Source of the DNA: Octopus sinensis
Taxonomy: Eukaryota
Direction: 5' to 3'
Assembly (NCBI RefSeq): GCF_006345805.1
Contig: NC_043004.1
Location: 106,950,001-107,014,000 of the forward strand
DNA: 64,000 bases
In this document: positions 39,487 to 63,913 of the stretch, piece by piece
How the letters are laid out: the number at the start of each line of letters is the position of its first letter
How positions within the stretch are numbered: position 1 is the stretch's first letter
The notes under the pieces: generated by a model
What the model was told of the DNA's origin: nothing
Seen by the model: the letters and a program-made list of their open reading frames with translations, nothing else
Databases searched by the model: none
Position numbers and translations under genes: made by a program

Positions 39487-39535
39487 ATGCACAATTTTGG
39501 TTTTATACTCACCGTTGCCGTTCTTCTAACTGCGG
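39487..39535 (+). CDS. Coding exon 1 of a secreted WAP-like peptide (signal peptide MHNFGFILTVAVLLTA)
   Basis: AACCATG start context, hydrophobic stretch, donor G|GTAAAT. Phase 1 matches the next exon. Confidence 0.7.
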
Positions 39536-39965
39536 GTAAATATCCTTCTTAATTGTGCTTTCGGTTTCAATACTTAAAGACTGTATATTCATCTGCCCAT
39601 GATTACCCACATGTGTGTATGTATGTGTGTGTGTATGTGTATGTGTGTATGTGTATAATATAATATGCGTGCATGTATGTATGTATATGTCTACGTATAT
39701 ATATATATATATATATGGCTATATATATGCATATGCACGCATATATATATATATATATATATATATATGGCTATATATATGCATATGCACGCATATGTAC
39801 ACATACATGTATATATGTATATATGCGTACCTATCTGTGTATGTATAGTAATCTTGTGTAAATTTATATTTAACACGCTCATCTGCAATCACCATTTATA
39901 TTATATATGCACATATAAATATATACATATATGTATATACATCATATATGTATAATATTTTCTAG

Positions 39966-40015
39966 CAAAAACTGTCCGACGAACGGGTACGTGAAACTCA
40001 GAGTAACAGGTTTTG
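39966..40015 (+). ncRNA. Minimal type I hammerhead ribozyme, core CCGACGA
   Basis: Stem I CAAAA-CTGT/ACAG-TTTTG, stem II ACG-GGTA-CGT, GAAA, stem III ACTC-A-GAGT, GUA triplet ending at 40005. Confidence 0.8.
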
Positions 40016-40831
40016 TTGAATTTTCTGCTGCTTTTAAATAAAGCATATTACTCTACCACTGGTATTTGAGTACTCTTATTTCCATTGTTTCACATTTATG
40101 TGTTTACTCCGGTATATATATATATATATATATATATATATATATATATATATATATATATATATATGTGTGTATATATATACACACACATATATATATA
40201 TGTGTATGTATGTACGTATATATATATATATATATATATATATATATATATATATATATATATATATATATATATATATATATATATATATATATATGTA
40301 TATATATATATGTATATATACAGTTATGTCTGGGGAGGGTCATTGATTGAAATAAACTCACACGCACACACCTAAACATACACACTGACGCTTACCTATT
40401 CAAAACACAATCTACTACGCCACACAGGCGCACGCACACTCACATCTGAACGCACGCACCTAAGTAAACATACATACATCTACACACACAGGCATAAGAC
40501 TAGTTCTCAGACAGACATAAAGCAGATATGGAAGAGTGAGGGCATGTCGTTGATGAGAAAGAACTCTGACGGAGAAAATTAACAACTGATCGATTGTTCA
40601 ATCAACACTTTCAAGAAACCACTGATTAGTTAGTTGGTAAAATAAAGAAGTGGTATTGGACTTGTGCGCGTGTTTTAATTCTTATTGGCATAATGACCCT
40701 ACCTAAACACAAGATTTATTTCAGCATACGAATTCATATCAAGTGCCTTGCGTACAAAATTCAAAAACGACGCATGTGTATATATAATAATAATAATAAT
40801 AATAATAATAATAATAATAATAATAATAATA

Positions 40832-41196
40832 AGGAGTGGCTGTGTGGTAAGTAGCTTGCTAACCAACCACACGGTTGCGGGTTCAGTCCCACTGCGTGGC
40901 ATCTTGGGCAAGTGTCTTCTGCTATAGCCCCAGGCCGACCAATGCCTTGTGAGTGGATTTGGTAGACGGAAACTGAAAGAAGCCTGTCGTATATATGTAT
41001 ATATATGTATATGTGTGTGTGTTTGTGTGTCTGTGTTTGTCCCCCTAGCATTGCTTGACAACCGATGCTGGTGTGTTTAGGTCCCCGTCACTTAGCGGTT
41101 CGGCAAAAAGAGACCGATAGAATAAGTACTAAAAGGTGGTGCTCCAGCATGGCCGCAGTCAAATGACTGAAACAAGTAAAAGAGTAAAGAGTAAGA
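40832..41196 (+). mobile_element. SINE family 1 subtype with a ~41-bp tail deletion
   Basis: GAATAAGTACT|AAAAGGTGGTGCTCC junction; near-identical to 53093-53469. Confidence 0.92.
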
Positions 41197-41489
41197 GAAT
41201 AATAATAATAGGGAATATTATATTGTGTAGCCTTTTTACCAATTATATACTTTTTATTTATTATTTTGTACTTTACTTAATTATTGGTATATTTATCGTA
41301 TATTTAATTTTTTTTCTATATGGTATAATTTAATTATATCATTGTTATTTCATTGTTGAATTGATAAAAGGTGGTTTTCTCTAATTTATATACATACATA
41401 CATACATACACACACACACACACACACACACACACACACACATATATATATATATATATATATATATATATATATATATATATATATAT

Positions 41490-41795
41490 ATCACGTGATC
41501 ACGTGACCGACCAGACCATCAGATGTTGTTACACATCGCTGGTCACAATGCGTTCGCATTGTTTTAGCCTTCGAACGACGCCACCCCGCTGGCTAAGCGA
41601 GCAGGCCAACAGAAAAAAGAGTGGGAGAAAGAGTGGTGAAAGAGTACAGCAGGGATCACCACCCCCTGCCGGAGCCTCGTGGAACTTTTAGGTGTTTTCG
41701 CTCATTAAACACTCACAACGCCCGGTCTGGGAATCGAAACCGCTATCCTGCGACCGCGATTCCGCTTCCCTAACCACTAGGCCATTGCGCCTCCA
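41490..41795 (-). mobile_element. SINE family 4
   Basis: Homologous to 13811-14080; TCACGTGATCACGTGA tail. Confidence 0.88.
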
Positions 41796-41852
41796 CACAC
41801 ACACACACACACACACACACGCACACACACACATATATATATATATATAATT

Positions 41853-61296: not shown

Positions 61297-61744
61297 GTAA
61301 GTAAAACCTTCTGTTATCACAATGTAGAGACTGAACTAAGGAGAGCATAATCCATAAGAAAGCCTATTAGAAATATCAGTTGATTCACCCTTAAATTATA
61401 TCCTACCATCTTAAATAAGTCTACACTAACCAATATAGATCTTGGTACAATAGGAAATAGTCTTGATTTGAACACCATTTGATCGAAGGCCTGCTCAATG
61501 AAGGCTTAGCTTGGCCTAAACAAAACAATGAATGGGAGGAAACGCTGGGTAATGTAGTTTAGGTAAACTGTTGCTGTAAAAAGATGAGACAGTCACGGCT
61601 GAGGTACCTTATACAAAGATTTCGTCAATCAGACTAACTTGGGACCAAGCAACAACGACAAGGTAGAAATTGAGATGAGATTATGGTATTGAAAGTAATA
61701 TTATTGTAATGTAATGTGGGGTTTGTTTTATGTGATGTAATATG

Positions 61745-62130
61745 AAGATACTTACTTCAGCCCTTTATCCCTTGTGAAGCGTAGACCATCGACGGCTTTT
61801 CTGCAGTTTTCTGCACTTTGCAGTTTTTTTCTGCTTCCCTTCAGTTAGATCCCTACTTGTTCAGCTCTTCTTCAGTAGCCCGAGGGCGTCCTCTCTTTCG
61901 CCTCCCTCGTTGGACCCATTCTTGTGTTTCCCACAGGGAATGCCTTCCTCTCCCAAGTCTTGTTTGTTTTGAATGTCATCAATGTATCTGTAACTTTTCT
62001 TTTTTAATAGTTAGGAGGACTGGCCTTTTGCTAGCCCATCTGGGAAGAGATGATCTATATTAGTCTAGCCTCTCGCCTTTGACTTCTCAACCAAGAGCTT
62101 AGCTTTTTGACTTGTCTACAGGCTTAGCTC
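61745..62130 (-). mobile_element. RTE-clade LINE 3' end remnant
   Basis: W..RGRRKRGRP motif and a TAAGTA-like tail. Confidence 0.6.
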
Positions 62131-62181
62131 TCTGGGTCATTGAGGCGCACAAGCTGCCACACCGCAACAGGGTGCAGGACA

Positions 62182-62237
62182 ACTCACCACCGCCGACTCA
62201 CCACCGCCAACTCACCACCGCCAACTCACCACCGCCG
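62182..62237. repeat. 14-bp minisatellite (ACTCACCACCGCC[G/A]) x4
   Basis: Direct reading. Confidence 0.9.
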
Positions 62238-62269
62238 ACTCAACATAGCTGACTCAAAACCATGACATC

Positions 62270-62500
62270 TGAACAACATTATTATCATGCAGGGCTTATA
62301 TTCAATATCATCGTGCACTTCACGTCTAATATGGGTCTCCGCTGTATTGGGCTGCTTGAAGATGGTCCTCGTCAACCTACCACCGTTGTCATTGATGATG
62401 TTCTGAACCTGCAGGACTAACTGGGCTGTTATTGCCTGACTGCTGAGAAAATTTTCTTTTGGTCTTGGATTATACTTCCATATCAATAGCATTCAATTCT
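62270..62500 (-). mobile_element. Tc1/mariner-superfamily (maT/DD37D-like) transposase N-terminal fragment
   Basis: VQNIINDN...IRREVHDDIEYKP resembles the HTH-adjacent IRR.VHEDL.YKSY motif. Confidence 0.45.
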
Positions 62501-63836
62501 TTCCAGACCATTTTTTTTCGGCAGTAGGAACTCCGAGTACGGTGTGTCTTTTACTTTCCCTGCGGGACTGAAACCTATGCAACTGATACGTCAGAAAGAG
62601 AAATGAAAAAGTTACAATTTAGTGTATACTGTGTGACATTACTTTAGATCGTCTTCCATTTAAGACTCACAAAAATGTGTTCACAAACACTCGGCATAAC
62701 CTGTATGTGGTGTAGCGATAATATCGCTGTAATTTAATATCAGAGCAGTGTTGTAATGGAGAATGGGGATCAATTAATAAGTCCTTTTATTCTAATGGCT
62801 TCGTTCTTCGAATTGCTGCTCACTGGAACTCATTACTATCGTCTTGTTTTCATTTGGTCTCTGATATTCAGTCCTTTAACCTATCTGTCAACCGAGGAGG
62901 AATTACAACCATGTTTCGTTGTCTGCTACCACAACAGCTCCTTTATAGGATCCAGTTAGCTCGAGACATCATCAGGAGGAACCACGTCCGGTTTCGACCC
63001 CTACTCCTCTACCGTTTTGACGTGGAGCGCGCCCCACCCCACCCTTTCGGAGGTGTCTTCAGCTCTGGTGTTGAGTGCATGTCTTCTTTCGCCTTCTTTC
63101 TTCTGTTCCCTGGCCTCTTCGATGTAGCGTCACCGAGTGTCGGCGGGCGACTGACTGTCTTGTCAAATTTCCCTTTAAATACCCGCTGCTGGGCGCCAGC
63201 TCTTTTTGCTGCTTTGTTGTCTCTTACGCTACCGTAGACTAAAACCTTGTTTGGGGCAACACCATTGTAGAAATATACTGTGCAGGCAGTTTCAAAATAA
63301 TATAATGCGAGGAGAGAGATGTGGCATTGTAGCATTGCCAGAATATAGTGTTGTGAAGGTTGTGGATGCAATGGTACGGTAATATAGAATGGAAGTAACG
63401 TTCTCGAAAAGTTTTAGAAATTTAGGAGCACAAAAATCTTGTTATACATATTTTTTTCTCATGACAAAAGTATTTTTTCTCATTTTATACTTACAGAAGG
63501 TGAGTAACCTTTTGTGCACTGTTTGCAAAATGTTATTGTGTGCGCACACACCAACAATTTGAACAGAACACTTCATGAAAAAAATAGTGTATTGTGATGG
63601 CAGTGTTGTAATTTTGTGAAGAAGATGCATTGTAAAAATGTAGGATAAAGTCAATGTAATAGTAATGTAGTAATAGTGAAAATTGTGGTCTGTAGTTTCA
63701 TAGTACAGAATGAGACCTCACACAGGCAACGTTTGTTTGCGAAAGCAACACTGTTTATCATATTGTTCTAGTTGCCTAATATCCGTAATATGTAATAATG
63801 TCAGAGCTGAGAATGTATTCACTGTATTTTTCTCAG

Positions 63837-63913
63837 ATGCTGAAACCTACGTTATTTATGCCAACGTGAGGTCTTCTACCCTCAAATCATACACTACCAT
63901 CTTAAAAAGATGA
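63837..63913 (+). CDS. Tentative terminal exon of the WAP-like peptide: (N)AETYVIYANVRSSTLKSYTTILKR*
   Basis: Strong acceptor TATTTTTCTCAG, and the phase-1 frame is open to TGA. Alternative acceptors exist, as does an internal GTGAGG donor. Confidence 0.4.

Follow-up and report, generated by a model that had tools for sequence, protein, structure and literature searches.

Does a 64,000-nucleotide stretch of the Octopus sinensis genome (contig NC_043004.1, positions 106,950,001 to 107,014,000 of the forward strand; hereafter the window) encode a small secreted cysteine-rich protein, and if so, to which family does it belong? An earlier note, made from the letters of the window, had proposed a hidden gene spread over 24 kb for a single-domain, six-cysteine peptide resembling the WAP four-disulfide core. 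The gene in question is LOC115215192, and it very probably encodes a secreted protein of two modules: a WAP-type domain without the C2-C7 disulfide, followed by a module resembling subdomain 1 of the VWC domain. Such a protein would bind a partner in the extracellular space, most likely as a non-canonical inhibitor or defence protein.

Gene structure and annotated product

A homology search with the 87-amino acid (aa) product of the earlier note, composed of exons 1-3 and a tentative fourth exon, returned a single protein. This is XP_029640240.1, an NCBI entry from Octopus sinensis of 103 aa named 'uncharacterized protein LOC115215192'. Residues 1-62 are 100% identical to the query, and exons 1-3 are the start of the annotated gene. 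The encoding contig, CM016866.1 (GCA_006345805.1), is 100% identical to the window over the 34.5 kb compared; positions in the locus fetched from this contig (L001) are converted to window coordinates by adding 29486. The three short exons with consensus splice sites and phase 1 were borne out, and their joined translation is exactly the peptide that had been given. The description of the gene as hidden and easily missed by annotation was wrong, because it is already present in RefSeq.

LOC115215192 is composed of four coding exons (Table 1) over approximately 27.4 kb rather than 24 kb, with phase 1 at every junction, introns of 9795, 11828 and 5502 nt, and a final coding exon outside the window. 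The coding sequence (CDS) of 49+90+48+125 = 312 nt gives 103 codons and a stop. The ATG at 39487 has an A at -3 and is preceded five codons upstream by an in-frame TAA (39472-39474), and the exon 1 donor reads G/GTAAAT with its GT at 39536. Exon 2, identified by tblastn at 100% identity (E 2.8e-16), lies between an acceptor ...ttgaacag/ and a donor G/GTAAGT, and exon 3 between ...ctatttcag/ and A/GTAAGT. The true last exon is located approximately 2.8 kb beyond the window end behind the acceptor ...ctttcttaataaactgcag/. After ...CVP the annotated product reads TDPNACFLNGKKIPYQGTFNRDCAECTCLGNNNLLCNPTPC, the exon 4 sequence, for which tblastn gave only chance-level matches inside the window.

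Three further features were observed along the gene. A TATA-like sequence, ATAAAATAA, is found at 39415-39430, approximately 65 nt 5' of the ATG, which is compatible with a very short 5' untranslated region (UTR). Retention of intron 3 (61297-61305) would stop the frame two codons on (...CVP-SK-stop) and give a WAP-only product without the second module; this is purely a sequence observation. The exon 4 range taken from the collection covers the CDS only, and its stop runs directly into a strong donor-like TAAG/GTAAGT (L001 37435-37445, window-equivalent 66921-66931); the 3' UTR of LOC115215192 may be spliced, or a further alternative exon may be present.

The first 16 residues look like a signal peptide, with a 3-residue n-region and a 13-residue hydrophobic core (mean Kyte-Doolittle hydropathy 2.44 over residues 4-16). 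The mature octopus protein is approximately 87 aa and 9.6 kDa, with an isoelectric point (pI) of about 6.9 and 12 cysteines. The single-domain, six-cysteine peptide first envisaged was incomplete, since exon 4 encodes a second module with six cysteines. The earlier note had also likened the cysteine order C-C-C-CC-C to a conotoxin framework; this idea was dropped because the product has 12 cysteines, and the exhaustive protein search described below gave no conotoxin relative.

A cuttlefish relative with three tandem units

When 1.84 billion representative proteins were searched exhaustively with phmmer, only one real relative emerged (P0002; E 5.6e-16), a 289-aa mRNA product of the cuttlefish Sepia esculenta. 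Behind an N-terminus resembling a signal peptide it contains the WAP-like plus VWC-like unit three times in tandem, and it is carried by 19 short RNA-seq contigs. Two of its runs (SRR19578109 and SRR20545806) belong to PRJNA844162, a project on juvenile Sepia esculenta transcriptomes. The open reading frame (ORF) of the contig is complete, with in-frame stops upstream and AATAAA polyadenylation signals. Three BLASTP alignments place the octopus protein colinear with each of the cuttlefish copies through all three exon junctions, and the C4-x5-CC and C8-x7-C spacings are kept across junctions 2 and 3. Because the spliced octopus product is colinear with an intronless cuttlefish mRNA ORF, the gene model is more than chance, and conservation at the sequence level is independent support for exons 1-4 as annotated.

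The four units compared, one from octopus and three from cuttlefish, are 78-79 residues long and share one cysteine template: CP-x9-10-C-x5-C-x5-CC-x7-8-C-x7-C-x16-18-C-x2-C-x-C-x7-C-x3-4-C. All 12 cysteines and their spacing are conserved between the octopus protein and the cuttlefish mRNA product at approximately 35% identity. Word-index searches with the 87-aa peptide, the four-unit alignment and the cuttlefish protein each returned the query's own cluster only, and neither the window nor the 13 kb that follow contained paralogous or tandem copies of the unit. Two other entries from the exhaustive search were rejected as spurious. P0004 is a long tandem repeat unlike the unit; P0003, judged from its Pfam matches and the hit table only, has Pfam matches with no relation to WAP or VWC, and only query residues 58-77 are covered by its best match.

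A WAP-type domain without the C2-C7 pair

The earlier note had suggested comparison with the Pfam WAP hidden Markov model (HMM). PF00095 passes its curated gathering cut-off of 20.8 bits with the octopus protein or domain (21.4-24.9 bits), residues 25-62 aligning to HMM positions 3-40 of 41. The family matches all four units with a best E of 5.8e-6, and over three stretches of the cuttlefish protein the score is 43.9 bits. When the non-cysteine residues were shuffled with the cysteines fixed, none of nine shuffles reached the cut-off and just one scored at all (14.4 bits), so the match does not come from cysteine spacing alone.

Elafin and SLPI sequences from the PDB give the canonical spacing C1-x6-C2-x8-C3-x5-C4-x5-C5C6-x3-C7-x3-C8, whereas the cephalopod units read C-x10/11-C-x5-C-x5-CC-x7/8-C, with six cysteines per WAP-like domain and not eight. 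The first cysteine is assigned as C1 because the conserved CP follows. The cuttlefish CC-x3-[S/A/D]-G-x2-C aligns exactly with CC-x3-C7-G-x2-C8 of elafin and SLPI, and the positions equivalent to C2 and C7 are occupied by residues other than cysteine in 4/4 units. This loss is shared by all four domains in the two species and is thus fixed rather than accidental. The PF00095 match and the comparison with elafin and SLPI thus uphold the proposal that the domain is WAP-like and lacks exactly C2 and C7, one full disulfide. The C1-C3 loop is also shorter by 4-5 residues (10-11 against 15 in elafin and SLPI).

Module 1 retains the G-x-C-P start, the C-x5-C-x5-CC centre and the terminal C-x-P. The PROSITE-type WAP signature is C-x-{C}-[DN]-x2-C-x5-CC; the octopus sequence CETNEDCPKEHSCC fits it exactly, and the cuttlefish units fit only the relaxed form C-x5-C-x5-CC, with a D before C4. 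By sequence, module 1 is a member of the WAP superfamily. An AlphaFold2 model of the WAP domain alone has a predicted local distance difference test (pLDDT) score of 72 and a predicted beta-hairpin over the CC...C region. Foldseek analysis of this model listed nawaprin, elafin and SLPI at ranks 4-6 (template modelling (TM) score 0.44-0.48, E 1.2-1.6), with omwaprin at TM 0.52. In sequence searches of the PDB, neither the protein nor the module profiles gave a significant match, the best being granulin (E 0.1), SLPI (E 2.9) and Dkk2 (E 0.73). A match to 53BP1 in these searches was spurious.

The second module resembles VWC subdomain 1

The exon 4 module contains six cysteines spaced C-x16-C-x2-C-x-C-x7-C-x4-C. 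The first part of the PROSITE-type VWFC pattern is C-x(2,3)-C-{CG}-C-x(6,14)-C-x(3,4)-C, and this prefix fits the C-terminal module in 4/4 units. This spacing is that of subdomain 1 of the von Willebrand C (VWC, chordin-like) domain, whose fold is fibronectin-type-I-like. The second VWC subdomain (...C-x(9,16)-CC-x(2,4)-C) is absent: the octopus protein ends at the last subdomain-1 cysteine, and in cuttlefish the next unit starts 12-15 residues after it. Below their thresholds, and for the octopus copy only, Pfam reported FnI_RECK (19.6 bits, cut-off 30) and TILa (16.1 bits, cut-off 27).

A two-module AlphaFold2 model, built from only 4 sequences, reached a pLDDT of 75.5. The top Foldseek matches to this model were modules of the VWF/mucin D assembly, which we take to be TIL/E modules, and fibronectin-I pairs. 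Superposition of 40-42 residues on the VWC domains of collagen IIA, NEL and CCN3 (5nir, 9oz8 and 5nb8) gave 1.7-2.7 A at a probability of 0.77-0.91 and E 0.7-1.7. With E-values of 0.04-1.7 across all these fold matches, they do no more than suggest such a fold. The earlier note had named, as grounds for rejecting its proposal, downstream exons whose added cysteines define a different fold, such as a prokineticin/colipase-like one. Six more cysteines were indeed found downstream, but they belong to a separate module resembling VWC subdomain 1, and the first domain is not redefined by them.

Similarity to known cysteine-rich proteins

Elafin, SLPI and the snake waprins (PF00095) share with the octopus domain the G-x-C-P start, the C-x2-[DN]-x2-C-x5-CC centre and the terminal C-x-P, as well as small size, secretion (predicted here) and a predicted beta-hairpin across CC...C. 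Elafin and SLPI differ in having eight cysteines paired C1-C6, C2-C7, C3-C5 and C4-C8 where the cephalopod domain has six, predicted to pair C1-C6, C3-C5 and C4-C8. Unlike in these inhibitors and the waprins, the octopus domain has an intron lying between C4 and C5 and is fused to a non-WAP module.

Six-cysteine WAP domains specific to one lineage are known from secreted, often tandem proteins of the trichocephalid nematodes Trichuris and Trichinella (PMC5012510, PMC6130879). The likeness to the cephalopod domain is one of cysteine number, exactly six being conserved in both. The trichocephalid proteins belong to another phylum, arose independently and are chains of WAP repeats for which a VWC-like partner is not reported.

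The second module shares C-x2-C-x-C-x7-C-x(3,4)-C with VWC and chordin-like domains, including arthropod single-VWC proteins and the E modules of VWF and mucins, in 4/4 units. Unlike a full VWC domain it is subdomain 1 alone, the C...CC-x2-4-C second half being missing. The order of the two modules recalls the TIL-E pairs of VWF (2mhp), in which a small inhibitor-like cystine module is followed by a VWC-like beta module. Crustins consist of a signal peptide, a WAP domain and another cysteine-rich region with 12 conserved cysteines (reviewed in PMC11767717), the same total as in the octopus protein. In crustins a four-cysteine region precedes an eight-cysteine WAP domain, whereas here the six-cysteine WAP domain comes first and the six-cysteine VWC-like module after it. 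No crustin was among the sequence relatives in the exhaustive phmmer search.

Proposed function

The octopus protein is predicted to be secreted and to bind another protein outside the cell, its most likely role being that of a non-canonical protease inhibitor or of a host-defence protein of the WAP type. The C1-C3 loop of elafin and SLPI carries the protease-binding P1 site; within this inhibitory loop C2 is P2 and the residue after C2 is P1 (1FLE and the SLPI complexes). Loss of the C2-C7 bridge would remove the anchor of an elafin-type loop. With C2 absent, the units contain no canonical loop with P1 directly after C2. Because C2-C7 is lost and the C1-C3 loop is shortened, canonical elastase-type inhibition is unlikely, and the protein is probably not a canonical elafin-type inhibitor. 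A Lys or Arg four residues after C1 (CPxx[K/R]) is conserved in 4/4 units and may be a residue that trypsin-like enzymes contact or use as P1.

A bolder interpretation, which at present seems unlikely, is that the unit of a three-disulfide WAP domain and VWC subdomain 1 represents a cephalopod-restricted and previously undescribed class of module. The freed C1-C3 loop would present the Lys/Arg and the VWC-like half would provide a second surface, giving a new kind of secreted inhibitor, or a ligand trap, with a part in defence, in development or in the biology of the shell remnant.

Alternative explanations

Several results weigh against the interpretation of LOC115215192 as a secreted WAP and VWC-like inhibitor or defence protein. 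Neither of the two fold searches gave a match at E <= 0.001, and they do not separate WAP, Dickkopf, knottin and follistatin-type small cystine-rich folds; with the WAP-only model, Dickkopf-1 cysteine-rich domain 2 (CRD2) ranks first in Foldseek, slightly above nawaprin, elafin and SLPI. Pfam VWC does not match module 2 at E <= 10. The family as sampled is limited to two species, octopus and cuttlefish. A transcript encoding the octopus protein is not present in a collection of 15 billion proteins, where its 90%-identity cluster has one member, from NCBI only; only the RefSeq model and conservation speak for expression in octopus. With a pI of 6.9 in octopus and 5.2 in cuttlefish, the proteins range from neutral to acidic, unlike typical cationic antimicrobial peptides, and the function proposed above is one that we infer in full from sequence.

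At the level of the gene, the earlier note had ended the peptide at a tentative fourth exon for 87 aa in total. This exon (63837-63913) is absent from XP_029640240.1, which continues instead in the real exon at 66799-66923, and is rejected also because its 25-aa tail matches nothing in the cuttlefish homologue. A stand-alone 87-aa six-cysteine WAP-like peptide with this ending, possibly an alternative isoform, would draw on the pyrimidine-rich tract of the acceptor at 63836/63837 and a frame open for 25 codons. The tail has no cysteines, the annotated exon 4 is conserved behind each cuttlefish WAP-like domain, and the last 2.7 kb of the window offer ten other phase-compatible acceptors behind pyrimidine tracts, 11 in all; such an isoform is the least probable of the alternatives considered here. 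Hardly more credible is a silent or decaying gene, or an artefact of gene prediction, as might be suspected from tiny exons amid transposon debris and short interspersed nuclear elements (SINEs) and from the missing transcript-derived octopus copy. The reading frame runs unbroken through the four exons, whose splice sites match the consensus, and a decaying pseudogene would not retain the 12 cysteines and their spacing relative to the cuttlefish mRNA.

At the level of the fold, the 12-cysteine unit could be one domain of the Dickkopf CRD2, colipase or prokineticin type, or a derivative. From the second cysteine on, its spacing (C-x5-C-x5-CC-x8-C-x7-C-x16-C-x2-C-x-C...) resembles CRD2, and the Dickkopf-2 stretches C-x5-C-x4-CC-x8-C-x9-C... 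and ...C-x-C-x5-C-x16-C are alike through about eight cysteines. Dickkopf-2 is also the sole PDB match of the whole-unit profile (hmmsearch, E 0.73), and the Foldseek list for the WAP-only model is headed by Dkk1 CRD2 (0.8 A over 27 residues, E 0.79) and Dkk4, with a snake prokineticin-fold protein at rank 10. None of these sequence or fold matches is significant, and the Pfam Dickkopf, prokineticin and colipase families are unmatched at E <= 10, whereas WAP passes in 4/4 units. WAP features are seen in the opening G-x-C-P and in [S/A/D]-G-x2-C, which is what is left of C7-G-x2-C8. The unit contains 12 cysteines against a pattern of ten, the two-module model aligns with Dkk1 at a TM-score of only 0.34-0.38 and a root-mean-square deviation of 11 A, and the C-terminal half superposes on VWC domains at approximately 2 A. 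A single Dickkopf-type domain is accordingly given little credence. Somewhat less improbable, though still doubtful, is a rival to the function only, in which the protein belongs to the extracellular matrix or a biomineral, binding mineral or matrix and modulating the growth of calcium carbonate, with the cuttlebone as one possible site. Such a role is modelled on the gastropod nacre proteins perlwapin and lustrin A; cuttlefish build a cuttlebone and the octopus has vestigial shell remnants only. The three-unit version is readily assembled from Sepia esculenta RNA-seq (19 contigs), the octopus gene has a single unit and no transcript in the collection, and both proteins fall in the neutral to acidic range. 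The shell matrices of molluscs contain WAP proteins and multi-VWC proteins (PMC3374290, PMC5854119). The cephalopod proteins lack the low-complexity stretches, acidic or repetitive, that many matrix proteins typically have, and the argument from the difference between species rests on two species. The reading of a secreted two-module protein with an inhibitory or defensive role is preferred.

Genomic surroundings

The rest of the window contains no other recognisable cellular gene, and Rfam and tRNA scans of it were empty. A SINE-like repeat of approximately 350 nt is present in at least 12 copies in both orientations (Table 1). The copies are 68-97% identical, the pair at 40832-41188 and 53101-53463 sharing 97%; many yield a common pseudo-peptide ...EDTCPRCHAVGLNPEPC... 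in tblastn, and they have no Rfam or tRNA match. Three of these copies lie in intron 1 (40832-41188, 41934-42306 and 48887-49165) and two in intron 2 (53101-53463 and 57964-58152); one ends approximately 165 nt 5' of the exon 2 acceptor. Most of the long ORFs ('MYVC...', 'HTYI...'; up to 570 aa), whatever their frame, come from long imperfect microsatellite arrays. Intron 1 also contains a 184-nt tandem duplication of 87% identity at 42407-42774. Transposon fragments are located upstream of the gene, the closest being of the long interspersed nuclear element (LINE) type, and the next annotated gene downstream is convergent and encodes an MRCK-type kinase.

Table 1. Coordinates of LOC115215192 and of other features in and beyond the window
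Feature	Position	Strand	Description
Coding exon 1	39487..39535	+	MHNFGFILTVAVLLTA plus first base of codon 17; 100% match to residues 1-16
Intron 1	39536..49330	+	GT...AG, phase 1; contains microsatellite arrays and SINE-like copies
Coding exon 2	49331..49420	+	DFVHPASIGNCPVVKHSPKTKCETNEDCPK; N-terminal half of WAP-type domain: C1, C3, C4 and conserved CPxx[K/R] loop
Intron 2	49421..61248	+	GT...AG, phase 1; cuts WAP domain between C4 and CC pair
Coding exon 3	61249..61296	+	EHSCCMYLLNRQVCVP; C-terminal half of WAP-type domain: C5, C6, C8; C7 position non-Cys
Intron 3, first 2704 nt	61297..64000	+	Continues to window-equivalent 66798
Tentative exon 4 (rejected)	63837..63913	+	Open stretch in intron 3 after an AG
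Coding exon 4 (true last)	window-equivalent 66799-66923 (L001 37313-37437)	+	125 nt; TDPNAC...NPTPC and stop TAA
SINE-like repeat, ~350 nt, at least 12 copies	1337-1613, 1947-2433, 12031-12423, 14154-14607, 17511-18133, 26968-27361	both	
SINE-like repeat, further copies	36675-36802, 40832-41188, 41934-42306, 48887-49165, 53101-53463, 57964-58152	both	
Microsatellite arrays, imperfect	3503-3928, 5644-6209, 9114-11413, 19519-20358, 39598-40390 (intron 1), 50566-51136 (intron 2)		(CATA/TATG)-type
LINE-type endonuclease fragment	37508-38389	+	Exo_endo_phos_2; 1.1 kb before ATG
Transposon fragment	35880-36311	-	Tc1/mariner HTH_Tnp_Tc3_2
Transposon fragment	29111-29710	-	Tc5/pogo CENP-B-like helix-turn-helix (HTH)
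Transposon fragment	14856-15860	+	zf-RVT reverse-transcriptase tail
MRCK-type kinase gene	L001 46289-47437; window-equivalent ~75775 onward	-	1363 aa; Pkinase, Rho_Binding, PH_MRCK

Novelty and significance

The gene is not a discovery, since a RefSeq entry exists; what is new is the interpretation of that entry. In the literature, LOC115215192 is unmentioned, no paper on cephalopod WAP proteins was found, and the pairing of a six-cysteine WAP domain with a module resembling VWC subdomain 1 was not found described. Two very large protein collections contain members of the family from octopus and cuttlefish only. A three-disulfide WAP domain is not new in kind, because the trichocephalid six-cysteine WAP has already been described. 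For annotation, the locus illustrates that a reading limited to a window may produce a believable but false last exon where the true one sits just outside.

The disulfide lost in these cephalopod proteins is the one that pins the protease-binding loop in elafin-type inhibitors. The WAP-like domain is always accompanied by its partner resembling VWC subdomain 1, a pairing conserved in octopus and cuttlefish and repeated in tandem in the latter. If the unit is a working inhibitor or ligand binder, it would offer a small natural experiment on the contribution of the C2-C7 bridge to how WAP domains work, and would represent a second independent lineage of three-disulfide WAP domains after that of the whipworms.

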